From: Histomonas meleagridis 2922-C6/04-290x
Lineage: Eukaryota; Protista; Parabasalia
Length of the DNA: 64,000 nt
Direction: 5' to 3'
Assembly (NCBI GenBank): GCA_020184695.1
Contig: JAANOX010000102.1
Span: forward strand, 6,008 to 70,007
Below the pieces are notes generated by a model. The model made no database searches. It was not told the origin of the DNA and worked only from the letters and a program-made list of their open reading frames with translations. The stretch's first letter is position 1; each line of letters opens with the position of its first letter. The position numbers were made by a program, and so were the translations under genes. Of this stretch, positions 1 through 45,026 are shown in pieces.

Positions 1-356
1 GAAAAATTCGTCGAAGTGAGAAAATGATTAATGAATTAATTAATTTGTTTGAATAAAGAAATAACAAATGTTAATACAAATGAATAAAATATTTGAGAAT
101 CAATCAATTGTACATCACAATTTCATATTAAAGATTTTTTCGATGAAAGAAACTTTTATTATGTCGGAATGGCTTCGAAGCTTGTAATATGTTTTATTTA
201 AAATCATTTATTTTTTACTGAAAATAATATGTAAAAAAAACTTTTAATCGAATCTTTTATATATTAAATATTTCCAAATACATCTTTATTTAATCATGTG
301 TTTATTTATTTATTTTGATATAGACAGTTTATTTATTTTGATAAAGAACTTCTTTA

Positions 357-790
357 GTGTTTTCGCTACCAAAGTATCCTTGCGCTGTAATGTGTGTCAT
401 ATCTTACATTATTGATGTAACAGTTGCTGCAGCATTAATAGCAAAGCGTCCCCAGCTATAGACACCAATGATTCCAATCTTTTTAGTATCAACGTTATTA
501 GGTATTGATATATAACCAACAGCTGCTTGATAATCTTCATTGTTGATATCTGGATAAGCAACATAAGTTGTATGCAACTTTCGCCTGTATATGATGGGTC
601 AAATGTAACAATTGTTAAAAAGCCACTTTCAGCTAAAGTTTGTGCATAAAGACCAGCTTCTTATTCTTTATCAGCTCCGAGGGGACCACAAGCTGCAATT
701 ACTGGAAGTTTGCTTTGAGAATTAATTGGCTCATATAAATCAGCATCTAATGAGAAACCATAACGATTATAAAATTTGATCTTGAGATAT
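357..790 (-). pseudogene. Decayed bacterial-type alpha/beta hydrolase (YcjY-like)
   Basis: Manual minus-strand translation gives KIKFYNRYGFSLDADLYEP..LPVIAACGPLGADKE*EAGLYAQTLAESGFLTIVTFDPSYTGES /fs/ VAYPDINNEDYQAAVGYI..VDTKKIGIIGVYSWGRFAINAAATVTSIM*DMTHITAQGYF. This is colinear with the bacterial consensus as I recall it (FKNRYG..DLY..GPFGAVKEQ..GLYAQ..FDPSYTGESGG..VASPDINTEDF..RIGIIGICGWGG..STMYDMS). In-frame TAA stops at 661-663 and 404-406, and a frameshift near 585. Confidence 0.85.
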
Positions 791-7934: not shown

Positions 7935-9293
7935 TCAAAATCGTTCTCCTCTTCTCTGTCTGACAAATGCACCTGTTGGAAGTGCCAACAAGTCAGCGTT
8001 TAGAGGGCTTAGATTTAATTCGAATTTAAATTCCAACACAGGTTTTGGTGCTTGTTTTGCAAACGAAAATGTTTCATTAGCAGATGAAACAATCACATCA
8101 TATTTGTCTTGTGGAGGAAGTGCATTCTGGCAGAAAACAGACACATCTGCTTCATTATCAGGGAGTATTAATGCAGGCCAATCCTTTTCTGTTGGCTCGC
8201 CATAAATTGGTGAGTCGGCGACCGTTTGTATTTTGTGTGCGTTCTCAATTTTGACAGGTTTGATGTGAAAATGATCGGCAAGAAATGCTGAAATTGACTT
8301 CTCGGCATTACAGATCGAAGTAGGATATTTATCATCAACAAGAACACAATTCCTGTTTGGGTAACAAGAATCGTTCTTTGCAGAAAATGAAGCAGAAACT
8401 TGGACGACAGAAACTGATTCTGTTTCAAGAGCTTGAAAAGCTGGATGTTTGCTTGAACCTGAAATGTTGACTTGGATAACGACATCTGCTTGTTGTGCTG
8501 TGATAGTGCTTGGATGATGTGTAATATCATCACCAAACGTAAAATCATCAAACGCATAAATAAGAAGATGGGAAGAAAAGAAACATGGAAGAGAGTTAAA
8601 TCCAACAAAGCAGATCATATCGCATACATCATTTCTAAGACGAAGTGCTTCATGTGAAAATGATCCAAAATCAAAAACAATGTAAATTTCGTAATTCCTG
8701 CTTAAAAGAGCTGAACACATAGCTTGAGTATGTCCATCAAAGCAGAATTTGTGTTCATCAAATTGACTTTGATTTTTGATTTGGATGAAATCAGGAGTTT
8801 CAGTTTTACGTGGGAAAAATGAAACTAACCCTGGGATGACAACAATTGGCTTGTGTTTGGATTCTCTGTATATTGATAAAATTTTGATTAAAATTGGAAT
8901 ATCAAATTGTGTATCAGAGAAAAATGAAACCAAAGCTTTTGTAGGCTGAAGTTGAGTTTGTTCTAAACTGTGACTAACAACAGTGCATTCTGAAGCTAAA
9001 CATTGTGCTGCTAAATAGAGATAAAGACTGCTTGTTACACATGCAGATGAAAAGATACATTGCTTAGTTTCATTTAAATAATTTTGGAAAGGACAATACT
9101 TGATAATCTTAATTCCAGATGGATAAAGTGGTCCAGAAAGTGATTTGGGGTATGTAGTTGTTGTCTTATCACAGATTTTTTCAAAGCTTAAAAAAAATTG
9201 AACTTCATAGCGATCATCGCTTCTGTATATAGTATTGAAGATATGAAATGCAGATGGATCTGCACCAATTATAACAATTTTTGTCCGATTCAT
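7935..9293 (-). CDS. Divergent COG2403-family protein (cDPG synthetase/arginine synthetase-like) lacking the Walker A motif
   Basis: KIVIIGADPSAFHIFNTIYRSDDRYEVQFF, YPKSLSGPLYPSGIKI, THHPSTITAQQADVVI, NCVLVDD and KPVLEFKFEL are colinear with the prokaryotic family as I recall it (RVIIMGAAGRDFHNFN..YEVVAF, YPPELAGxLYPxGIPI, YHPGETNFRxADVII, RVLVVED, KPAVRVRYEL). No GK[ST] at the expected position. Confidence 0.75.
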   Translation of the reverse strand: MNRTKIVIIGADPSAFHIFNTIYRSDDRYEVQFFLSFEKICDKTTTTYPKSLSGPLYPSGIKIIKYCPFQNYLNETKQCIFSSACVTSSLYLYLAAQCLASECTVVSHSLEQTQLQPTKALVSFFSDTQFDIPILIKILSIYRESKHKPIVVIPGLVSFFPRKTETPDFIQIKNQSQFDEHKFCFDGHTQAMCSALLSRNYEIYIVFDFGSFSHEALRLRNDVCDMICFVGFNSLPCFFSSHLLIYAFDDFTFGDDITHHPSTITAQQADVVIQVNISGSSKHPAFQALETESVSVVQVSASFSAKNDSCYPNRNCVLVDDKYPTSICNAEKSISAFLADHFHIKPVKIENAHKIQTVADSPIYGEPTEKDWPALILPDNEADVSVFCQNALPPQDKYDVIVSSANETFSFAKQAPKPVLEFKFELNLSPLNADLLALPTGAFVRQRRGERF

Positions 9294-35305: not shown

Positions 35306-36595
35306 TTAGTGTCCTAAGTAATTTGAAGCAATAGATAAATCGGAGAAAAGAATTGGGAAAGATTTCTTCATTTTTGAAGGTGCATTTCCTGTGAGTACAA
35401 ATAGCGTATCTGCAATTCCTCCGATCAAAGAAACGAAGTTACAGCATCTAAAGAACGTTAAAAAGACAGTAAAAATGACAATTAACCCCAACGCATATGG
35501 ATCGACCACAAAGCCATTCGAAACCAAATATCCGGCAATGCCTGCAAAGGATGCTATTGCCATTGAGAACATTAAGCTAGAGCTATACACTTGTGAATGA
35601 TCTGCTAATGATACCATCTTTGTAGATCGTTCAAGTTCTTGTTGCCTCATATCTCCGGCACCAAAATCAATGCCAAAGGCTGCGCAGTACACAAGTGTTA
35701 TTTCTGACTGTTCTATTAATTTTGTGTATTTGATATATGGAAATAGTCGAGCTAACCAAAGGTAAGGAGAAACGAAGGCAGAATAAGCAATAGTTCCTAG
35801 TGATGACATTATCGCGTGCTTTACAAGTAGAAGAATAGGTGATCTGGGCATTCGTAATGTACCGCCAAAATCGATGTTAAGAATGGTAAAGCCTGAAGAA
35901 ACAAATATGCAAAAGTGCGATATGAAGGAATTTATCCAAAAGTAAGAGAGAGCAAGTAAAATGTGGAGGAATTTGCTCCATTCAAGAACTTGGATTCTAT
36001 GAGAAACCCATATATAAAGAGTAGAAGGAATAATGGAAATAAAATTCATTATAAATGTGAATAATAAAAGTTTCGGATTACTTGTTTGGATATTTGATAT
36101 GGAAGATAATAAACTTATCGATGATTTCTTGTAAGATCTTAGAGTTACCACTAAAGCAATGGATTCAGCTGTGAGTGGTATAAGGATAATCGCTGAAAAA
36201 TTCTTGAAGATTAGCATATATAAAACAAAGGTGATTATAAACAAACCTGCTGAAACAAAATATGATGCAGAAATGAAATAATTTGGTACGTAGATTTGGA
36301 AAATAGCAAATATTAAAACAAAACAAATGCTTGCTAATGGAGGAACTAATGTAAGAGCAAGGATTTTTGATGTAGGCTCCGCTTCATAATATCTGTCTGG
36401 ATCATAAGAAATAAGGGCGATTGAAATTATTAATGTAATAAACAAATTCGCTAAGAAGATTAGAGCAAACAATCCATCATTTCTTTGACGTTTTGCAAAA
36501 ACTTTTAAATAAAGCTCGTCTTCGTTTATGGTAGGTTGTTCTTCACTGTTATGTTGATCTTCGTGTAAAAGGGGCGTTCTTTCTTCCTCAGACAT
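35306..36595 (-). CDS. Choline transporter-like (CTL/SLC44/PNS1) membrane protein
   Basis: About 10 hydrophobic segments; RNDGLFALIF, SLGTIAYSAF, LVYCAAFGIDF and ADTLFV match the CTL pattern. Confidence 0.75.
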   Translation of the reverse strand: MSEEERTPLLHEDQHNSEEQPTINEDELYLKVFAKRQRNDGLFALIFLANLFITLIISIALISYDPDRYYEAEPTSKILALTLVPPLASICFVLIFAIFQIYVPNYFISASYFVSAGLFIITFVLYMLIFKNFSAIILIPLTAESIALVVTLRSYKKSSISLLSSISNIQTSNPKLLLFTFIMNFISIIPSTLYIWVSHRIQVLEWSKFLHILLALSYFWINSFISHFCIFVSSGFTILNIDFGGTLRMPRSPILLLVKHAIMSSLGTIAYSAFVSPYLWLARLFPYIKYTKLIEQSEITLVYCAAFGIDFGAGDMRQQELERSTKMVSLADHSQVYSSSLMFSMAIASFAGIAGYLVSNGFVVDPYALGLIVIFTVFLTFFRCCNFVSLIGGIADTLFVLTGNAPSKMKKSFPILFSDLSIASNYLGH

Positions 36596-36961: not shown

Positions 36962-38228
36962 GGGGTGGAAAAAGTGCGTTCGTCAGCCTTTTTTTTTAAT
37001 GAATAAAAAAGTAAAAGAAATTTTGTTTATTTATTATTATGATATGTATTCACCTTGAGTTTTAATTGTAATTCAAAGTCTGTCCATCCATTCATTATAT
37101 ACGACTCTGAAGGTGTATTTAGGAATATTATACAGTAATGTTTCAACCTTTTGAAAAAGTTGATCTTCATTTTCAAACTCCTCACCTGTGAGAATTTTTT
37201 TATATATTTGAACAGAAAATCGTCAAAAGGTGCGAGGTCTGGCGAAAACGGGGGTTGCGGAAGTCTTTTAATTCCCAATTTATTCAATTTTTCATTAATA
37301 AAATGAGGTTGGGCGTTATTCATATGCAAAAAATATCCCTTCGTTGAAATTCTTTTTGCCAAATCTCCAAGTACAACTTCAGAAAAAAAAATTCGATTAA
37401 ATTTTTGGCCTATCGGGAGCATTGTTATTGATTTGATACCAGTTATAGACCATATAACAGATATCATTACTTTTTTGGAGGCAATAGTTTGTTTGAGTTT
37501 GTATGGTTTTTGCACTCCAGATTCAATCCACATCGAGTTTCTTTCGTTAACAAAATAAATCCAGGTTTCATCTTGCGTCAATATGTGTCTTAGTCTGTAG
37601 TCATTTGAACTAGAAAGTAATTCAAATAATTCGGGAGCAATGGCAGCTCTTTTGGCTTTAATTTCTGGAGTCAACTTATGTGGGATCCATTTGAAGTTAA
37701 TTTTTTCATCCCTAAAATATTAATCATTATATTTTTCACTGTTTTTGGATCTGCGCCTACATTCTTCGCAATTTTCTTCGTCGATGCATATGGATAACTT
37801 AATATAAAACTGGTTATTCTTTGATCTAAATCTGATCTTCTTGGTCTCCCTGTTTTTTTCTGTTCGAAAATTGAGAAGGTATGTTCATTCATCTCCATTC
37901 CTGAACTGTTCGAAGTGTAATAATATTATCACCATATACAGCACATAATCGCCTATATATGTCTTGATTTTCATTTGATTCTAACCAAAGGAAATGGACA
38001 ACAGAACGTAATTCCTCAATTGGAACTGACATTAAAATGATTAAACGTTCTCTTTCAGAGGTATCCTGAAAAAAAGTAGTTTTACTTCATGCATCATATT
38101 TACTTGGAAAAAAGTATCATAATAATAATGATAATATATTTATTATAAATTTTATTTATATAATTTGATTTCATTAATATCTAATATAAATCAAAAAAAA
38201 AGCTGACGAACGGACTTTTTCCACCCCC
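36962..38228 (-). mobile_element. Tc1/mariner (mariner-like) DNA transposon, 1267 bp, non-autonomous
   Basis: TIRs ggggtggaaaaagtgcgttcgtcagc (36962-36987) and gctgacgaacggactttttccaccccc (38202-38228) differ by one mismatch and one extra G/C, and each is followed inward by a T/A run. TA target duplication at 36960-61 and 38229-30. Confidence 0.93.
37038..38032 (-). pseudogene. Mariner transposase, disrupted
   Basis: Pieced across frames: MSVPIEELRSVVHFLWL..IYRRLCAVYG..TLRTVQEW..GRPR..KWIPHKLT..ILTQDETW..FLHMNNAQPH..PPFSPDLAPFDDFLF..YNEWMDRL*..QGEY. Several frameshifts and stops; the second catalytic Asp (HDNA) reads NNA. Confidence 0.9.
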
Positions 38229-38339: not shown

Positions 38340-40544
38340 TTAACTAATTTCCATGTTTTTCACTAGTGTATCATAATCTTGTATTTGCCTTTCAATATCA
38401 ATTTGTGCGATATTTGGCACTGATTGCGAGTAAGCAGTCGAAGGTGATAGCTCAAATTCAGAGATCAGTTTGCTTTGGTCGCCCCATTTTCCGTTGAGAT
38501 ATTTCATACTTGCTGATCCTGAGAATCTCCTCTTTGCCGCCAAAGCGTTTAATATTCCGAATAGTATTGCTAACCCCATTCCTCTTGCTGTATATAACTT
38601 ATAACCACGTGCTACATCTTCATCGTCTACAGATATACCACATACTTTGAGTACACTTACTGAGAAGAACCCAAATTCTTCAGGAAGTACAATAAAGTCA
38701 ACTACTCCTGGATAAAGAGACACCACTTCAGGAACTTTTTTCTCGATTTCTGGACCAGGTATAAATGAAAATATTCCTGTTAATATTTTACCCCTTAGAG
38801 GATCTTTTATAACTTCTCCTCCAGCATTTTCGAGTGTTTCATGATTTGTCATTAAGGCCTTTACAGGTCTTAATTGACTTAAGGATTTCCTGAGCTGTTC
38901 AACGTTTAAATTTGTTTTGACTTCAACCGCCGCTAACACATTGTCGGCTAGAGTCGGTGAAATTATTGAACCGGATTTGTCAATTGTCAGAGTTGGCGAT
39001 GAATCGTTTACGACGATGATGTCGATTTGTCCCGAAACGTTTGAAGATGAATCAATTATCTCACCTGAAGTAACTCTGTAACAAGGAGGGAGATGGCTTT
39101 GTAAGAAAAGCCTGCAAAAGGCTTCACGATTTGAACTGGAATTATTGGTTACAAATAACTCATGTTTTGAAGCATTTGCTAATGAACTTAATATTTCTAC
39201 TTGAGCTTCGAAATGTGCCTTTAAAGGTGGCGTTCGTGATGCTGAAAATTGTTCTACAAAATGCTTAAAAATTGCATAATCAAGATCTTCAATTTCAGGT
39301 GTTGTGTACTTCATTTGTTTCCCTTTTACACCTTTAATGTCTTTTTCAAGAGAAACAATTACAACATCAGCGTCTGATTGATTAATTGATTCGGCAATCT
39401 TGTTCATTTCTGCCTCAGATTTTTCAGTGTTGCCTAACATAGTTGTAGGAGATGCACTTCGTGGGAAATTGGCTACAATATTATTTGTGCTATATGCACC
39501 TAGCTCATTAGCAACTTGTGCAGCTGAACCTTTGTTTTCAACGTGGTCAACTGTTATTACATTTTGGTTAAAAATGTCGTATACAGAATTTTCATCTAAT
39601 ACATAGGAGCTACGAGCAAAGTATATTTGATGAAGTGATGAATTGACAAGTGTATAAAAAAGTGACTTCGCTTCTTCTGAAAAAGTTGTTTTGTGTTTGG
39701 AAACAACAATTATGTTAGATGAAAGGTGGAAATTAAGAAGTCCGGGCCAAAGAGAAAACTTTCGGATGTTACTTAATGAGCTTGATGAGGCTAAGCAAAA
39801 ATTGGATGTTGAGGAAATATTAGGACATTCACATGAACGTGAATCATAAATAATAAAGTCTGATGTTTGCTCGGCAAGAATAATAGCTTTACGCACATTG
39901 GTGGTGGCGTAGACATGTGCACCATTCTCGAGGTAAAGTTTGATCTGCCAAGAATCTGTGTCAGAAAAAATGTCATCGGGAACAGTGTCACCAGGATTAA
40001 ATCTATAAAGGAATCCATCGTTAACTGAAAACTCGGTTGGAACAGGAATGTATTCAAGTTCAGTAATAGGATATATCACAGAAACCCTGCGTTGAAATTT
40101 AGATGATATAATATATAAAAAGTACCGACAGACTTGAGTCTTGCCAAGACGTTGAGCAAGAGAAGTAACAGTAATTAACGGCTTGAATGATTTGATCTTA
40201 GGATTTGCATGAGGAACAAATTCAAGTTCGCAATGGCCAGTAGCAATGATACGGTTGATTATTGATTGAACTTCTTGCATTGTTATATTTTGAACATGAA
40301 GAATGCATTTTTGAATATGGTGCTTGAGAATTACCTTTTCGAGATCTTTAAGTGGGTAAACATGTATGGGTGATTTCTTGTATCCCTTGAACCAGGTGAT
40401 TGGAGGTTTATCATTAGTTTGGTATACAAATCCCCAAATTTCTCTGTCAACATCTGTTGCATAAGAACGCCAATATGTGTGTAATATTGAATAGTCACAT
40501 CCAACAATAAGAATTCGGACTTTGGGTGAAGAAGTTTTGATCAT
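38340..40544 (-). CDS. Fusion protein: COG2403-family P-loop module (aa ~1-435) plus DUF6602-like PD-(D/E)xK nuclease domain (aa ~438-690)
   Basis: N-part: PIHVYPLKDLEKVI, KSFKPLITVTSLAQRLGKTQV, LAEQTSDFIIYD, WPGLLNF, ESINQSDADVVIV. C-part: NREAFCRLFLQSHLPPCYRVTSGEIIDS..SGQIDIIV..DNVLAAVEVKTNL. One uninterrupted 734-aa ORF. Confidence 0.8.
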   Translation of the reverse strand: MIKTSSPKVRILIVGCDYSILHTYWRSYATDVDREIWGFVYQTNDKPPITWFKGYKKSPIHVYPLKDLEKVILKHHIQKCILHVQNITMQEVQSIINRIIATGHCELEFVPHANPKIKSFKPLITVTSLAQRLGKTQVCRYFLYIISSKFQRRVSVIYPITELEYIPVPTEFSVNDGFLYRFNPGDTVPDDIFSDTDSWQIKLYLENGAHVYATTNVRKAIILAEQTSDFIIYDSRSCECPNISSTSNFCLASSSSLSNIRKFSLWPGLLNFHLSSNIIVVSKHKTTFSEEAKSLFYTLVNSSLHQIYFARSSYVLDENSVYDIFNQNVITVDHVENKGSAAQVANELGAYSTNNIVANFPRSASPTTMLGNTEKSEAEMNKIAESINQSDADVVIVSLEKDIKGVKGKQMKYTTPEIEDLDYAIFKHFVEQFSASRTPPLKAHFEAQVEILSSLANASKHELFVTNNSSSNREAFCRLFLQSHLPPCYRVTSGEIIDSSSNVSGQIDIIVVNDSSPTLTIDKSGSIISPTLADNVLAAVEVKTNLNVEQLRKSLSQLRPVKALMTNHETLENAGGEVIKDPLRGKILTGIFSFIPGPEIEKKVPEVVSLYPGVVDFIVLPEEFGFFSVSVLKVCGISVDDEDVARGYKLYTARGMGLAILFGILNALAAKRRFSGSASMKYLNGKWGDQSKLISEFELSPSTAYSQSVPNIAQIDIERQIQDYDTLVKNMEIS

Positions 40545-40917
40545 TTCTCTAATTCGATAGAACTGTTTTCAATTGTAAATTTGACATTTTTGAATTCTTG
40601 AATTTTTTTCTTTCATAGAATTACATACATCGAAAGCAAATAACCCATGAATCATTAAACAGATGTTGTAGAATATTAAACTTCTGAGAAAAATGAGTTT
40701 TAACCAAAAAATTGATATCTTAATCTTTTCTTATTTAAGCATACTTTGCTAAAAACTATTATTAATTTTGTTAAACAGATGATGTGTATGATGTAATCAC
40801 CTTTATTGTTCTTATTTGCCAAAAAACACGAACAAAAAATTTATTTCTGTTATGACTATTAACGGTCGATAATGTAAAATAACGTTTTACAGTAAATTTC
40901 AAAAACTATAAACACAA

Positions 40918-41444: not shown

Positions 41445-41867
41445 TTATTGACCTTCGAGGGCTTCCTTACGTTGTTGACGACGAACCTTATGACGTTGAG
41501 CACGAACACCAGATCCCCAAACCTTAACCTTTTGTTTACGTGTGTTCTTACGCATACGACGTGTAACCTTGCTCTTTTCTGCAAGGCCAGCTTTGATAAG
41601 ACGATGCTTTGGTTCAATTGTCTTGAGTGCATCAAGATTGTCGTAGATAAGACCGAAGCCTGTTGTACGGCCACCTCCGAACTTTGTTTCAAGTGAGAAA
41701 ATAACAATGAGATCCTTGTTGGCTTTCAATTGTTTTGCAACCAAATCTTTGATTTCGTCGCGTGTTGGTGCTCTGGCACCTGGGTGCTTAAGATCGACAA
41801 CAAATTGTTTGCGATCTAATAATTTGTTAACAATATATTTGCGAATACGCATAGTAACCTTCGACAT
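41445..41867 (-). CDS. RPS24: 40S ribosomal protein S24 (eS24), 140 aa
   Basis: MSKVTMRIRK..NKLLDRKQFVVDLKHPG..FGGGRTTGFGLIYD..EPKHRL. The true start is taken as the ATG at 41867, not 41954. Confidence 0.97.
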   Translation of the reverse strand: MSKVTMRIRKYIVNKLLDRKQFVVDLKHPGARAPTRDEIKDLVAKQLKANKDLIVIFSLETKFGGGRTTGFGLIYDNLDALKTIEPKHRLIKAGLAEKSKVTRRMRKNTRKQKVKVWGSGVRAQRHKVRRQQRKEALEGQ

Positions 41868-41871
41868 TGGC

Positions 41872-41890
41872 AAAGGTCGGCCAAGCCGAT
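41872..41890 (-). promoter_or_regulatory. M5 (CCTTT) core promoter with upstream M3-like motif
   Basis: Minus strand reads atcggctt-ggccga-CCTTT-gcca-ATG. M5 is the Inr-alternative element known from trichomonad ribosomal protein genes. Confidence 0.65.
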
Positions 41891-41995
41891 ACAATTTTGA
41901 ATATATAATTCCGATGGCAATTTTTTTGTGAAGAAAAATAAATGGCAATTCCACTTGGAAGTGTACGTTTAAAATAAGGAAAGTGTAAATTTGGG

Positions 41996-42610
41996 ATGCA
42001 ACAAAAAATAACTGAAGAACAACTTTTAAAAGATGGCTTTAATATCTTTAAAGCCAGTGTATATTCAGATGTGATATTAGAAAATGCTGAAACACAAAAC
42101 AGTTCAGAAGAAATTGATAAAAAAATAATGGAAAAATGGAAAAATCTAACAGAGGAGGAAAAAGCAAGTTATTCCCAAGAAGCACCACATGAAAGGTCAT
42201 TACTAAATGGCGATTTAGAAAGATTAAATGATGTTAATGTTATAAAAAATAATATCATTCAAGTGAAGCAAGAAATTTCTCATATAAATCAAGAAATTAC
42301 ACAAGCTATGACTCAAACCAACAAGTTAAATTTAGAAATAATTGAGATGTCACAAAATATAAATCATCTCAATGATCAAATCAAACTCTTTTCCAAGGAA
42401 CGCAATCAAATTTTATATAACAAATTGCCACAAATGAAAGATGAGCTTGTTCAGATTGAAATAAATTCGAGCAATGTCTGGCGAAGATTACAAAAAGCAT
42501 CAGATGCACAGGTTCCTAATCCCAAAAAGCCAAAACAAAAATTCGACCCAACTAAACTGATGAGATATGGAACGTGTACTATTTGTTTGCTGCTGTTCTT
42601 GCTTTTGTAA
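41996..42610 (+). CDS. HMG-box-like plus coiled-coil protein
   Basis: GFNIFKASV..KIMEKWKNLTEEEKASY is HMG-box-like and is followed by heptad repeats. Confidence 0.55.
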   Translation: MQQKITEEQLLKDGFNIFKASVYSDVILENAETQNSSEEIDKKIMEKWKNLTEEEKASYSQEAPHERSLLNGDLERLNDVNVIKNNIIQVKQEISHINQEITQAMTQTNKLNLEIIEMSQNINHLNDQIKLFSKERNQILYNKLPQMKDELVQIEINSSNVWRRLQKASDAQVPNPKKPKQKFDPTKLMRYGTCTICLLLFLLL

Positions 42611-42821: not shown

Positions 42822-44696
42822 TTATGCATTTAACAATATCATCATGTTTTCGTTTTCTTCTTCATATATTCCAGATAAAATTGATTTATCTTGAAGCTTC
42901 AATTTTAAGGCATTATTAATTGCTATGATTTTTGCTTTCTTAATTTCATCTTTTGTCCTTTGTTCTACTTCATCATTTGATTCTTCGACATATACAAGAG
43001 GTAAAATATTTTTATCTTCGTTTTCAGTTTTGTGAGATTTTTTATTTTGTTTTCTAATATCAATATCTAACAAGTAATCAATAGGTATGACTTCAAAAGC
43101 AGAGTGCTGTCTTTTTCTTTTATTTAATATAATCATTTTTGATCTTTCGAAGAGAATAACATTTTTTGGTAGAAATATTTCATTTTGTTTCTCTAAGTTA
43201 GGGAAGTAATTATATACATAGTTAAGAGAACAATCTACCATAGGTGGATTACTTTTAATTCTTTTATCAATGACAGTATTTATGTATTTTTTTAAATAAT
43301 TTGACTCAAATCCAACATTATCAATCATTACGCACATAATGAAAGTATGTAATGGCAGTTTATCTTTCATCTTTTGCTTTTTCACTGTTTCTTCTTGAAC
43401 AGCAAAAAGAAAAGGAAGAATGAATTTTGACCAAATTCTATTATTAATATTGGCAAATTTCTTTAAATATTCAAGAATTGCAACATATATTTCTTCAGGA
43501 TGATTTTTATGGTGTATTAAAAAAAGTAAAATCTTCCTAAAACTTGATTTTATCATTGAATCCTTATAAAAGAAACCAACTGCTTCATCATAAACAGAAA
43601 TAAATTTAAACATCATCATTATTTCATCAACAGAATATTTATCTTCCGTTTTTATAGGTAATGTTTCCCAAATTTGGGAATGAGTAATTTTTATGAGTTC
43701 TATATTTTCAAAATTTTTCAAAATATTATAACTAAGTTTTAATGATTCAGATATAAGTAAATTATTATCATTTGATTTTATTATTGGTATTTTTAAAATA
43801 AACGAAAAAATTATAATCAAAGAATCATATTGAGCAGAAGAACTATATTTAAAACTTTTAATTTCTTCAATAAATTTTTGTGATATTTCTAATATTGAAA
43901 TACATATAATAGTATTTTCTATATGTACCTGAAGTTCTTCTAAAAGTAAAAAAAATAAAGGTAATGAACAATTTTCATTAATTTCTTTGATTAGCAATAT
44001 CATAAAACTTGAAACAAATTCGTTTTGAACCCAATAATTGTTGTCATTTAAAAAAGTAAATAATATTTCTCCAAATCGTGAGATTGTTAACGGAATTGCA
44101 CAATGTGCAACCTCTTTTATAATATCACTATCTAATTTATTAATTGGACTTATTATTTCTAAAGATGAAAATATTTCTTTGATTGGAAGCATATACATTT
44201 GGCAATTTTGGATGATTTTACAAAGTGATTGATTAATCTCTTCTGAATTTTTTCGAAGTTCTAAATACATGTATACTATTTGTTTAAGATGCTTTACTAG
44301 TACAATATGATTTGAATTTTTTATTAATATTATTGTTGATTCTTGAATAATTTCTAGGTATTCCATGTTTCTTGATCGCAAGAGCATTAGAATAGAAGAA
44401 GTAAGAGATGAAGAAAGATCTATATTGATTTCATTTACTGATTCAAGTAATTTCCCAAGAATTTCCATTCCAACAATAACATTACTATATCTAAAATTTT
44501 TAACTCCTTTTCTAATCTTCTCAATAAAAATTTCGTTAATATTTGATAAACGTGAAATATCATGTGTACCCCATTGTATTAACTCACGAACACGTGCTGA
44601 AACAGGATCAGGTCTATCATCATTTGGATAACATGCATTAATTCTTGCTAAAATATCATATTCTCTAATACAAAGGCAATGACAACATTTTTGCAT
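42822..44696 (-). CDS. EFR3-like ARM scaffold protein
   Basis: Likely start MQKCCHCLC (Cys cluster). EYDILARINACYP..RELIQWG..RLSNINEIF..YSNVIVGMEILGKLL parallels the EFR3 N-terminus (RYKRLVDNIFP..KLTFYA..KLDRIG..GYVLIAMEALDQLL). Confidence 0.65.
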   Translation of the reverse strand: MQKCCHCLCIREYDILARINACYPNDDRPDPVSARVRELIQWGTHDISRLSNINEIFIEKIRKGVKNFRYSNVIVGMEILGKLLESVNEINIDLSSSLTSSILMLLRSRNMEYLEIIQESTIILIKNSNHIVLVKHLKQIVYMYLELRKNSEEINQSLCKIIQNCQMYMLPIKEIFSSLEIISPINKLDSDIIKEVAHCAIPLTISRFGEILFTFLNDNNYWVQNEFVSSFMILLIKEINENCSLPLFFLLLEELQVHIENTIICISILEISQKFIEEIKSFKYSSSAQYDSLIIIFSFILKIPIIKSNDNNLLISESLKLSYNILKNFENIELIKITHSQIWETLPIKTEDKYSVDEIMMMFKFISVYDEAVGFFYKDSMIKSSFRKILLFLIHHKNHPEEIYVAILEYLKKFANINNRIWSKFILPFLFAVQEETVKKQKMKDKLPLHTFIMCVMIDNVGFESNYLKKYINTVIDKRIKSNPPMVDCSLNYVYNYFPNLEKQNEIFLPKNVILFERSKMIILNKRKRQHSAFEVIPIDYLLDIDIRKQNKKSHKTENEDKNILPLVYVEESNDEVEQRTKDEIKKAKIIAINNALKLKLQDKSILSGIYEEENENMMILLNA

Positions 44697-45026
44697 TTTA
44701 CATAAAAAAAGGAAAACCATTCATTCAAAACTATTTAATATTTAGTAAAAATAAGAGAAATTTTCGAGAAATAAGGAAAACATTTGATTTTTGTTTATCA
44801 GTTCAATATAACAAAATTTAAAAACAATTCAAAACAAAAGCATCAGACCAAATAAAGCATCAAAAGTGGAACGTGCTGTTGGAAACCTCTTTTTCTATTC
44901 AATTTTGAATTAACACAAAAAGTGTGCAAGTTCTTGGCTCTAAACAACAAAAAATAAGAAATTCGGAAAAGTATTTTATTTGTGATAATTTATTTAAGTT
45001 TGGTTTGGCTATAATTTTCTAAAAAA

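Follow-up and report, generated by a model that had tools for sequence, protein, structure and literature searches.

The window, a stretch of 64,000 nucleotides from contig JAANOX010000102.1 of the parabasalid Histomonas meleagridis, contains a gene in which a P-loop module of the COG2403 family is fused to a complete nuclease domain of the NucC/DUF6602 type. The fusion is a parabasalid-wide family with multiple paralogues, whose members have been deposited under the names 'DUF6602 domain-containing', 'GTPase' or 'SLL0572 family'. The arrangement and conservation of the two modeled halves tentatively suggest a Mg-dependent DNase in which nucleotide binding by the fused P-loop module may govern a NucC-like activation through oligomerisation. 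The gene occupies the following position:

38340..40544, minus strand: whole gene, a 734-residue intronless two-domain fusion open reading frame (ORF), stop codon included (ORF list)

The C-terminal half, which carries the nuclease, comprised the following features:

38445..39233, minus strand: residues 438-700, the complete NucC/DUF6602 restriction-endonuclease-fold domain (Pfam DUF6602; VIA-align to NucC 6q1h)
39162..39221, minus strand: residues 442-461, the helix equivalent to NucC alpha0, the element of trimer-trimer contact and hexamerisation (secondary structure of the model, structural range, invariant columns)
39123..39125, minus strand: E474 (NREAF), an accessory acidic residue of the nuclease site (aligned with the Glu of the NucC 'NES' motif)
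38916..39023, minus strand: catalytic core I-D508-x32-E541-V-K543 (translation; hidden Markov model (HMM) alignments to NucC)
38796..38858, minus strand: residues 563-583, a beta-hairpin that occupies the place of the 'gate loop' of NucC (strands 570-572 and 578-580 of the model; alignment to Escherichia coli NucC 127-144)
38340..38444, minus strand: residues 701-734 and the stop codon, a poorly conserved, low-confidence helical tail (predicted local distance difference test score (pLDDT) about 50; variable in the alignment)

The Pfam model DUF6602 (PF20247) matched residues 467-564 with an E-value of 1e-24 and a score of 86.9 bits against a cut-off of 27, and two PADLOC models matched the same half of the protein (PD_DExK, 1.6e-22; NucC, 4e-15). 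A search of the PDB with the single protein recovered the Serratia, Vibrio and E. coli NucC enzymes at E-values of 4.7e-7 to 8e-3, while NucC structures were found at 1.3e-8 to 1e-3 when the search was made with the family profile. The AlphaFold2 (AF2) model of the whole protein, built from a 67-row alignment, had a pLDDT of 86.9 and a predicted template modelling score (pTM) of 0.82. Foldseek matched this model to NucC with an E-value of about 1e-12 and a template modelling (TM) score by target of 0.75, and VIA-align superimposed model residues 437..691 on residues 3..241 of the 6q1h chain with a Z-score of 20.9 and 230 of 239 residues aligned. As modeled, the C-terminal half is a complete NucC fold that includes alpha0, the hairpin at the gate-loop position (570-580) and the C-terminal helices. 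The idea that the N-terminal module takes the place of helix alpha0 was ruled out; alpha0 is retained in the superposition. Weak Pfam, NCBIfam and PDB matches to Hydrolase_6, YbgT, Rex and beta-arrestin fell below the thresholds and were dismissed.

The catalytic motif of E. coli NucC is IDx30EAK, formed by D73, E104 and K106 (10.1101/694703). The corresponding Mg-binding and catalytic residues of the fusion protein, D508, E541 and K543, were invariant across an 18-sequence alignment, and E474 was present as well. The initial annotation, made from the letters alone, had read this half as a PD-(D/E)xK nuclease of the DUF6602 type with a complete catalytic set, and both statements are upheld, the first by the Pfam match and the structural Z-score, the second by the presence of all four residues. 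The fold comparison that it had proposed for both halves, carried out with AF2 and Foldseek, gave matches to NucC for the C-terminal half and to cyclic 2,3-diphosphoglycerate (cDPG) synthetase (cDPGS) and LpxK for the N-terminal half.

In NucC, the trimers are inactive until cyclic triadenylate (cA3) closes the gate loops, and pairing of the trimers through alpha0 then orders a linker that borders the active site (10.1101/694703). The alpha0 equivalent of the fusion family was strongly conserved, with L441, H444, F445, Q448 and I451 invariant, and a short linker, residues 434-441, joins the P-loop module straight to this helix. Alpha0, the adjoining linker and the hairpin at the gate-loop position were among the best-conserved stretches of the family. 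The residues with which NucC contacts cA3 or latches the loop were compared in an HMM alignment to 6p7o that covered R53, Y81, H136 and Y141, T226 lying outside the aligned stretch. R53 was replaced by Cys or Gly, Y81 by Ser or Cys and Y141 by Val or Ile, and the position of H136 was variable. These four residues are not kept, and therefore a trigger other than cA3 would be needed.

The N-terminal half contained four features:

40185..40544, minus strand: residues 1-120, the N-terminal alpha/beta subdomain of the COG2403 module, corresponding to the N-terminal (CpgS_N-type) domain of cDPGS (hhalign from residue 6; VIA-align to cDPGS)
39234..40184, minus strand: residues 121-437, the LpxK-like P-loop core of the COG2403 module (VIA-align and Foldseek to LpxK)
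40134..40163, minus strand: P-loop S128-LAQRLGKT-Q137 (translation, invariant columns, comparison with the stand-alone proteins)
39843..39872, minus strand: E225-Q226 to D234, the end of a Walker-B-like strand (alignment, conservation table)

No Pfam or NCBIfam model matched residues 1-437, and the assignment was made with profiles and structures. A profile of 16 N domains of the family matched cDPG synthetase 9sxb in the PDB with an E-value of 2e-3. Against 1.84 billion representatives, the N-domain profile found 203 proteins, none of them a prokaryotic fusion. Next after the fused proteins came stand-alone proteins of about 440 residues, named 'predicted GTPase' by JGI, which covered the whole profile at E-values of 1e-26 to 1e-15. 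Profile-profile comparison of the fused and stand-alone N-domain sets with hhalign gave 99.9% and an E-value of 3.9e-37 over 402 columns, and the profile of the stand-alone COG2403 proteins scored 78 bits against the fusion protein (hmmsearch). The AF2 model was matched to cDPGS (Foldseek E-value 6e-16; VIA-align Z-score 20.5 over model residues 6..435) and to LpxK (Foldseek E-value 1e-10; Z-score 20.4 over 88..434), and an Atlas cluster named 'putative cDPG synthetase' gave a structural TM score of 0.75 across residues 6-434. The N-terminal half, residues 6-437, is a full-length COG2403 homologue, as had been proposed from the motifs alone; the hhalign result and the Foldseek match to cDPGS leave that assignment standing. 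The sequence and structure matches of both halves go far past what chance would give. No support was seen for a hydrogenosomal leader, as the N-terminus of the window protein leads directly into the first conserved strand of the domain.

The signature of the stand-alone proteins consists of A-x-R-T-G-x-G-K-S, RHPMPY, an acidic EE.EE cluster, GVDY, AE[KQ], WDGGNND, DPLR, YPGE.N and NK. The fused clade retains only G134-K135-[TS]136, the GVD-type Asp (in most members), A224-E225, the Walker B D234 and P267-G268..N271, while RTG, RHPMPY, the EE.EE cluster, GGNN, DPLR and NK have been lost or replaced. At the P-loop, the stand-alone enzymes read A-V-R-T-G-x-G-K-S; in the core of the fusion family G134 and K135 were invariant and T/S136 conserved. 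The Walker-B-like stretch reads 'AEQxxDxIIYD' in the fusion family and 'AEKxADVILWDGGNND' in the stand-alone proteins. The fused clade also has a conserved set of its own, S-L-A-P-x-L ahead of GK, Q226, S-R-x-C238-E and W266, and the invariant residues of the N domain within the family are E225, Q226, C238, W266-P267-G268 and N271. The mean column identity was 49% in the N domain and 53% in the nuclease half. Because its conservation is comparable to that of the nuclease half and it has its own invariants, the N module appears to be under selection for function rather than in decay, and the pattern is that of a neofunctionalised module.

The sequence changes argue strongly against the N module being an arginine synthetase or a cDPG synthetase. 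The reaction of ArcE, ADP + Pi + arginine <-> ATP + citrulline + NH3, interconverts arginine and citrulline, and it is very unlikely that the fused protein catalyses it because the motifs of the ArcE family are lost, the fused clade is separate and a nuclease is attached. Binding of phosphate or a nucleotide by the altered P-loop (S-L-A-x-x-L-G-K-T) is plausible. The description of this site as a Walker A remnant in the initial annotation requires revision: 28 of 35 two-domain sequences have GK[ST], mostly together with the Walker B Asp, so that the site is more than a remnant, while the rest of the COG2403 active-site signature has been replaced.

The two-domain architecture was found in H. 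meleagridis (annotated 'GTPase'), in Tritrichomonas foetus (TRFO_09774 and TRFO_18376), in Tritrichomonas musculus (two proteins) and in Trichomonas vaginalis (TVAG_013580, annotated 'SLL0572 protein family' / DUF6602), and it also occurred on many Logan, ENA and JGI contigs. Divergent members were located on contigs of 200-600 kb next to eukaryotic genes, among them those for Spt20, a PP1-type phosphatase, Arf and a bromodomain protein. The initial annotation had stated that no such fusion was known. That holds for prokaryotes, where none was found, but the architecture is not peculiar to this genome and occurs across the parabasalids. A scan of GTDB with C-domain patterns found neither a prokaryotic fusion nor a close stand-alone C domain, a word-index search with the C-domain profile returned parabasalid-type proteins and fragments only, and a scan of viral contigs found no copy of the fusion. 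There was no full-length match among the AFDB clusters, in which the best TM score by query was 0.45 with a single domain covered. No published description of the fusion was found in the literature that could be searched. One candidate for a bacterial copy, P0186, was rejected. Its locus, L008, is the 2140-bp contig JAAZJS010000222.1 of assembly GCA_012800245.1, which carries the C domain preceded by the last part of the N domain and appears to be eukaryotic sequence wrongly binned into a public Bacteroidales metagenome-assembled genome.

A maximum-likelihood tree was calculated for 121 N domains, 29 of them fused and 92 stand-alone, the latter consisting of 79 from named prokaryotic genomes, 12 further database matches and a second ORF of the window (7935-9293). 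All 29 fused N domains formed one clade with a Shimodaira-Hasegawa-like approximate likelihood ratio test (SH-aLRT) value of 100 and a long stem that set it apart from the stand-alone rows. No resolvable prokaryotic sister of the fused clade, and hence no donor lineage of the N domain, was apparent in the 121-row tree. The simplest history is a single ancient event of acquisition and fusion before the split of Trichomonadida and Tritrichomonadida, followed by expansion of the paralogues.

The possibility that the gene is an artefact, by bacterial contamination, chimeric assembly or erroneous read-through of two genes, could be entertained because beyond the parabasalids the relatives of both domains are solely prokaryotic and one homologue is filed under a Bacteroidales genome, but it is effectively refuted by the eukaryotic neighbours (S24e, HMG-box, EFR3-like and the mariner fragment described below), by a guanine-cytosine (GC) content equal to that of the neighbouring coding DNA, by the occurrence of the same architecture in at least six independently assembled parabasalid genomes and many contigs, by the end of the N domain upstream on the 2.1-kb 'Bacteroidales' contig, which marks it as mis-binned, and by the presence of 99-100% of the sampled words of the ORF in four sequencing runs guessed to be RNA.

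The conservation of the two sites was then compared across the family. The nuclease triad D-E-K was exact in 41 of the 48 distinct sequences that cover the nuclease site, and E474 was kept in 43 of these. GK[ST] was found in 28 of the 35 two-domain sequences, 26 of which also had the Walker B Asp. By these counts the nuclease site is more strongly conserved than the P-loop site. In the window protein, both the P-loop site (GKT, D234) and the nuclease site were intact.

Several considerations shaped the reading of the protein as a nucleotide-gated nuclease. Gating of a sensor-effector kind, proposed in the initial annotation, is plausible. The protein would be a cytosolic or nuclear, Mg-dependent DNA endonuclease, in which the activation step, the cA3-driven pairing of trimers in NucC, would have come under the control of the P-loop module, by way of nucleotide binding, hydrolysis or dimerisation. 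This module sits immediately before alpha0, and related enzymes, which are obligately dimeric or tetrameric, undergo closure around ATP; in cDPGS, for example, the N-terminal subdomains form the dimer interface, and the enclosure of ATP and substrate involves movements of several angstroms (PMC10690619). A dimerising module joined to a trimerising nuclease would be expected to give a dimer of trimers, which is the geometry of active NucC. The pTM of the whole chain fits an arrangement in which the halves have a definite orientation relative to each other. The biological role would then lie in the control of DNA, either foreign or mobile DNA or the processing of damage, and not in arginine or cDPG metabolism.

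Three observations weigh against this reading, 1) seven of the 35 two-domain members lack GK[ST] and six of them (P0025, P0033, P0035, P0036, P0037 and P0043) have an intact triad, so that binding of a nucleoside triphosphate cannot be universally required, 2) T. vaginalis TVAG_013580 (P0026, 700 residues) has GKT but carries, in the numbering of the window protein, the substitutions E474 to Gly and D508 to Ser; its nuclease domain is probably catalytically dead in that lineage and consequently the family can persist without nuclease chemistry and 3) the prediction for ArcE is a tetramer rather than a dimer (PMC11032458). To judge from these sequences, the P-loop and nuclease activities are evidently not strictly coupled, and in side branches either site can evolve without the other.

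A more specific version, that a bacterial abortive-infection nuclease of the NucC type was domesticated by parabasalids and its cyclic-oligonucleotide switch replaced by an ATP- or GTP-responsive COG2403 module, to give a self-contained dimer-of-trimers DNase for eukaryotic genome defence, is unlikely on present evidence. Its targets would be viruses, Maverick or transposon DNA, or the DNA of ingested bacteria.

The foremost alternative to nucleotide gating, although on balance somewhat unlikely, is that the N module is a pseudoenzyme that serves in folding, oligomerisation, localisation or partner binding, and that the nuclease is constitutive or otherwise regulated and has a housekeeping function in repair, recombination or turnover. 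The disappearance of most of the invariant COG2403 motifs (RTG, RHPMPY, the EE.EE cluster, GGNN, DPLR and NK) is what would be expected of such a scaffold, as are the six paralogues that have D-E-K without GK[ST] and the character of the family, which is old, multi-copy and compositionally native. However, 28 members with no more than 36-60% identity have preserved GK[ST] and the Walker B Asp, which would be difficult to account for if neither phosphate nor nucleotide were bound, and a scaffold does not explain the strong invariants that the N domain has of its own.

It is rather improbable that the N module is an active ATP-dependent ligase, kinase or cyclase with a new substrate, which either makes an activator of the nuclease in cis or acts on the ends of nucleic acids. 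Its relatives ArcE (PMC11032458) and cDPGS (PMC10690619) are ATP-dependent enzymes of small molecules, the Lys and Thr of the P-loop and the Walker B Asp are kept, and a new set of residues (AEQ, C238, WPG..N) stands at the places of the old substrate motifs. The gate-loop-like hairpin of the nuclease half is also kept and conserved, so that a ligand pocket may persist. However, no candidate substrate suggests itself, GGNN and the acidic cluster, both invariant in the stand-alone enzymes, are gone, and paralogues without the P-loop exist.

Less credible still is a DNA-binding or regulatory factor in which the nuclease site goes unused in vivo, a highly improbable account for a family in which the window protein and 41 of 48 relatives have the exact D-E-K triad and invariant neighbouring residues, even though a few proteins, the T. 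vaginalis orthologue among them, lack one or more catalytic residues and are still full-length. A nuclease gated by nucleotide binding to its P-loop module thus remains the tentatively preferred reading.

The relationship of the fusion to previously described systems is one of shared parts in a different assembly. With NucC, an effector of the cyclic-oligonucleotide-based antiphage signalling system (CBASS) and of type III clustered regularly interspaced short palindromic repeats (CRISPR) systems that also belongs to PF20247, it has in common the whole fold, alpha0, the gate-loop hairpin and the catalytic motif ID-x(30-32)-E-[AV]-K. Unlike NucC, it is eukaryotic, has a P-loop module of 437 residues at its N-terminus and lacks R53 and Y81 for contact with cA3 as well as H136 and Y141 of the latch; the sequence identity is only 16-22%. 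No CD-NTase or type III CRISPR locus lay beside the fusion gene, the neighbours in the window and around the divergent homologues being eukaryotic. Stand-alone DUF6602 proteins with a role in phage defence include NucC and 'Damona' (10.1101/2024.07.02.601686). In the bacterial defence proteins ('Damona'; DUF6602 and Prok-JAB clusters), the DUF6602 nuclease likewise occurs alone or joined to another module, but the partner domains are different, none is a COG2403 module and all are prokaryotic.

Parabasalids are not known as producers of cDPG. The structures of cDPGS (PDB 8ORK, 8ORU and 9SXB) share with the fusion an N-terminal dimerisation subdomain and an LpxK-like P-loop core, but the identity is about 11%, and the residues K145 and R146 with which the cDPGS P-loop binds substrate correspond to variable residues in the fusion.

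ArcE (TK2200) homologues have been annotated as putative GTPases, weakly resemble cDPGS and co-occur with arcB and arcC (PMC11032458); the same study supports the statement of the initial annotation that COG2403 holds both cDPGS and ArcE. These 'predicted GTPase' (sll0572-type) proteins have the P-loop GK[ST], the Walker B Asp and the PG..N motif in common with the fusion, whereas RTG, RHPMPY, the acidic cluster, GGNN, DPLR and NK are lost in the fusion and a nuclease is attached. The stand-alone family is very common among archaea and bacteria; the species genomes of GTDB contain at least 589 loci. In a metagenomic representative from outside the window (P0133, 766 residues), a carbamate kinase (arcC, E-value 9e-101) is fused to a canonical COG2403 domain, which is independent support for a role of the stand-alone family in the ArcE/arginine pathway.

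The window also contains a second, stand-alone COG2403 homologue of 452 residues (7935-9293, minus strand), which scored 82 bits against the stand-alone profile. Its residues 2-123 matched profile positions 2-124 and its residues 219-323 matched positions 213-322, with the P-loop region unmatched. In the N-domain tree it had a very long branch and fell outside the fused clade, and BLASTP of this ORF against the fused protein gave no match.

The fusion ORF has an ATG start and is uninterrupted for 734 codons, and the ORF list is in accord with the single frame at 38340-40544 that was first reported. The positions given at that time were correct; SLAQRLGKTQ is encoded at 40134-40163, E474 at 39123-39125, D508 at 39021-39023 and E541-V-K543 at 38916-38924. 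The GC content of the ORF was 0.35, the same as that of the other coding stretches in the window, its sampled words were 99-100% present in the four runs guessed to be RNA, and the deposited protein was a 100% match. Eighteen homologues were 37-61% identical over more than 90% of the length. The parabasalid host assumed at the outset agrees with the nearest named homologues, from H. meleagridis (61%) and T. foetus (51%). An upstream ATG was observed 39 nucleotides before the start codon (40545-40590, minus strand), opening a frame of 12 codons that ends in a TAG just ahead of the main ATG.

The fusion gene is flanked by ordinary eukaryotic genes, which encode ribosomal protein S24e (41445-41954, minus strand), an HMG-box protein (41996-42610, plus strand), an EFR3-like protein (42822-44720, minus strand) and a choline-transporter-like membrane protein (35306-36595, minus strand). 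About 670 bp downstream of the fusion gene, an ORF of 215 residues (37027-37674, minus strand) encodes a partial mariner-type DDE transposase (Pfam Transposase_1, E-value 4e-6) and is probably a decayed Tc1/mariner copy.

The two parts of the protein were previously known apart from each other and from prokaryotes alone. NucC is a well-studied suicide nuclease of CBASS and type III CRISPR systems, and the knowledge of COG2403 is recent, the function of an arginine synthetase (ArcE) dating from 2024 and the first crystal structure (cDPGS) from 2023. The results advise caution in annotating these fusion proteins as 'GTPase' or as enzymes of the arginine pathway. Should the nuclease prove active and under the control of the P-loop module, the family would be a new case of a bacterial immune effector rewired in eukaryotes and a natural experiment in driving the trimer-to-hexamer switch of NucC without cA3. 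The conserved, multi-paralogue fusion extends across an entire eukaryotic phylum, to which the human and veterinary parasites Trichomonas, Tritrichomonas and Histomonas belong.

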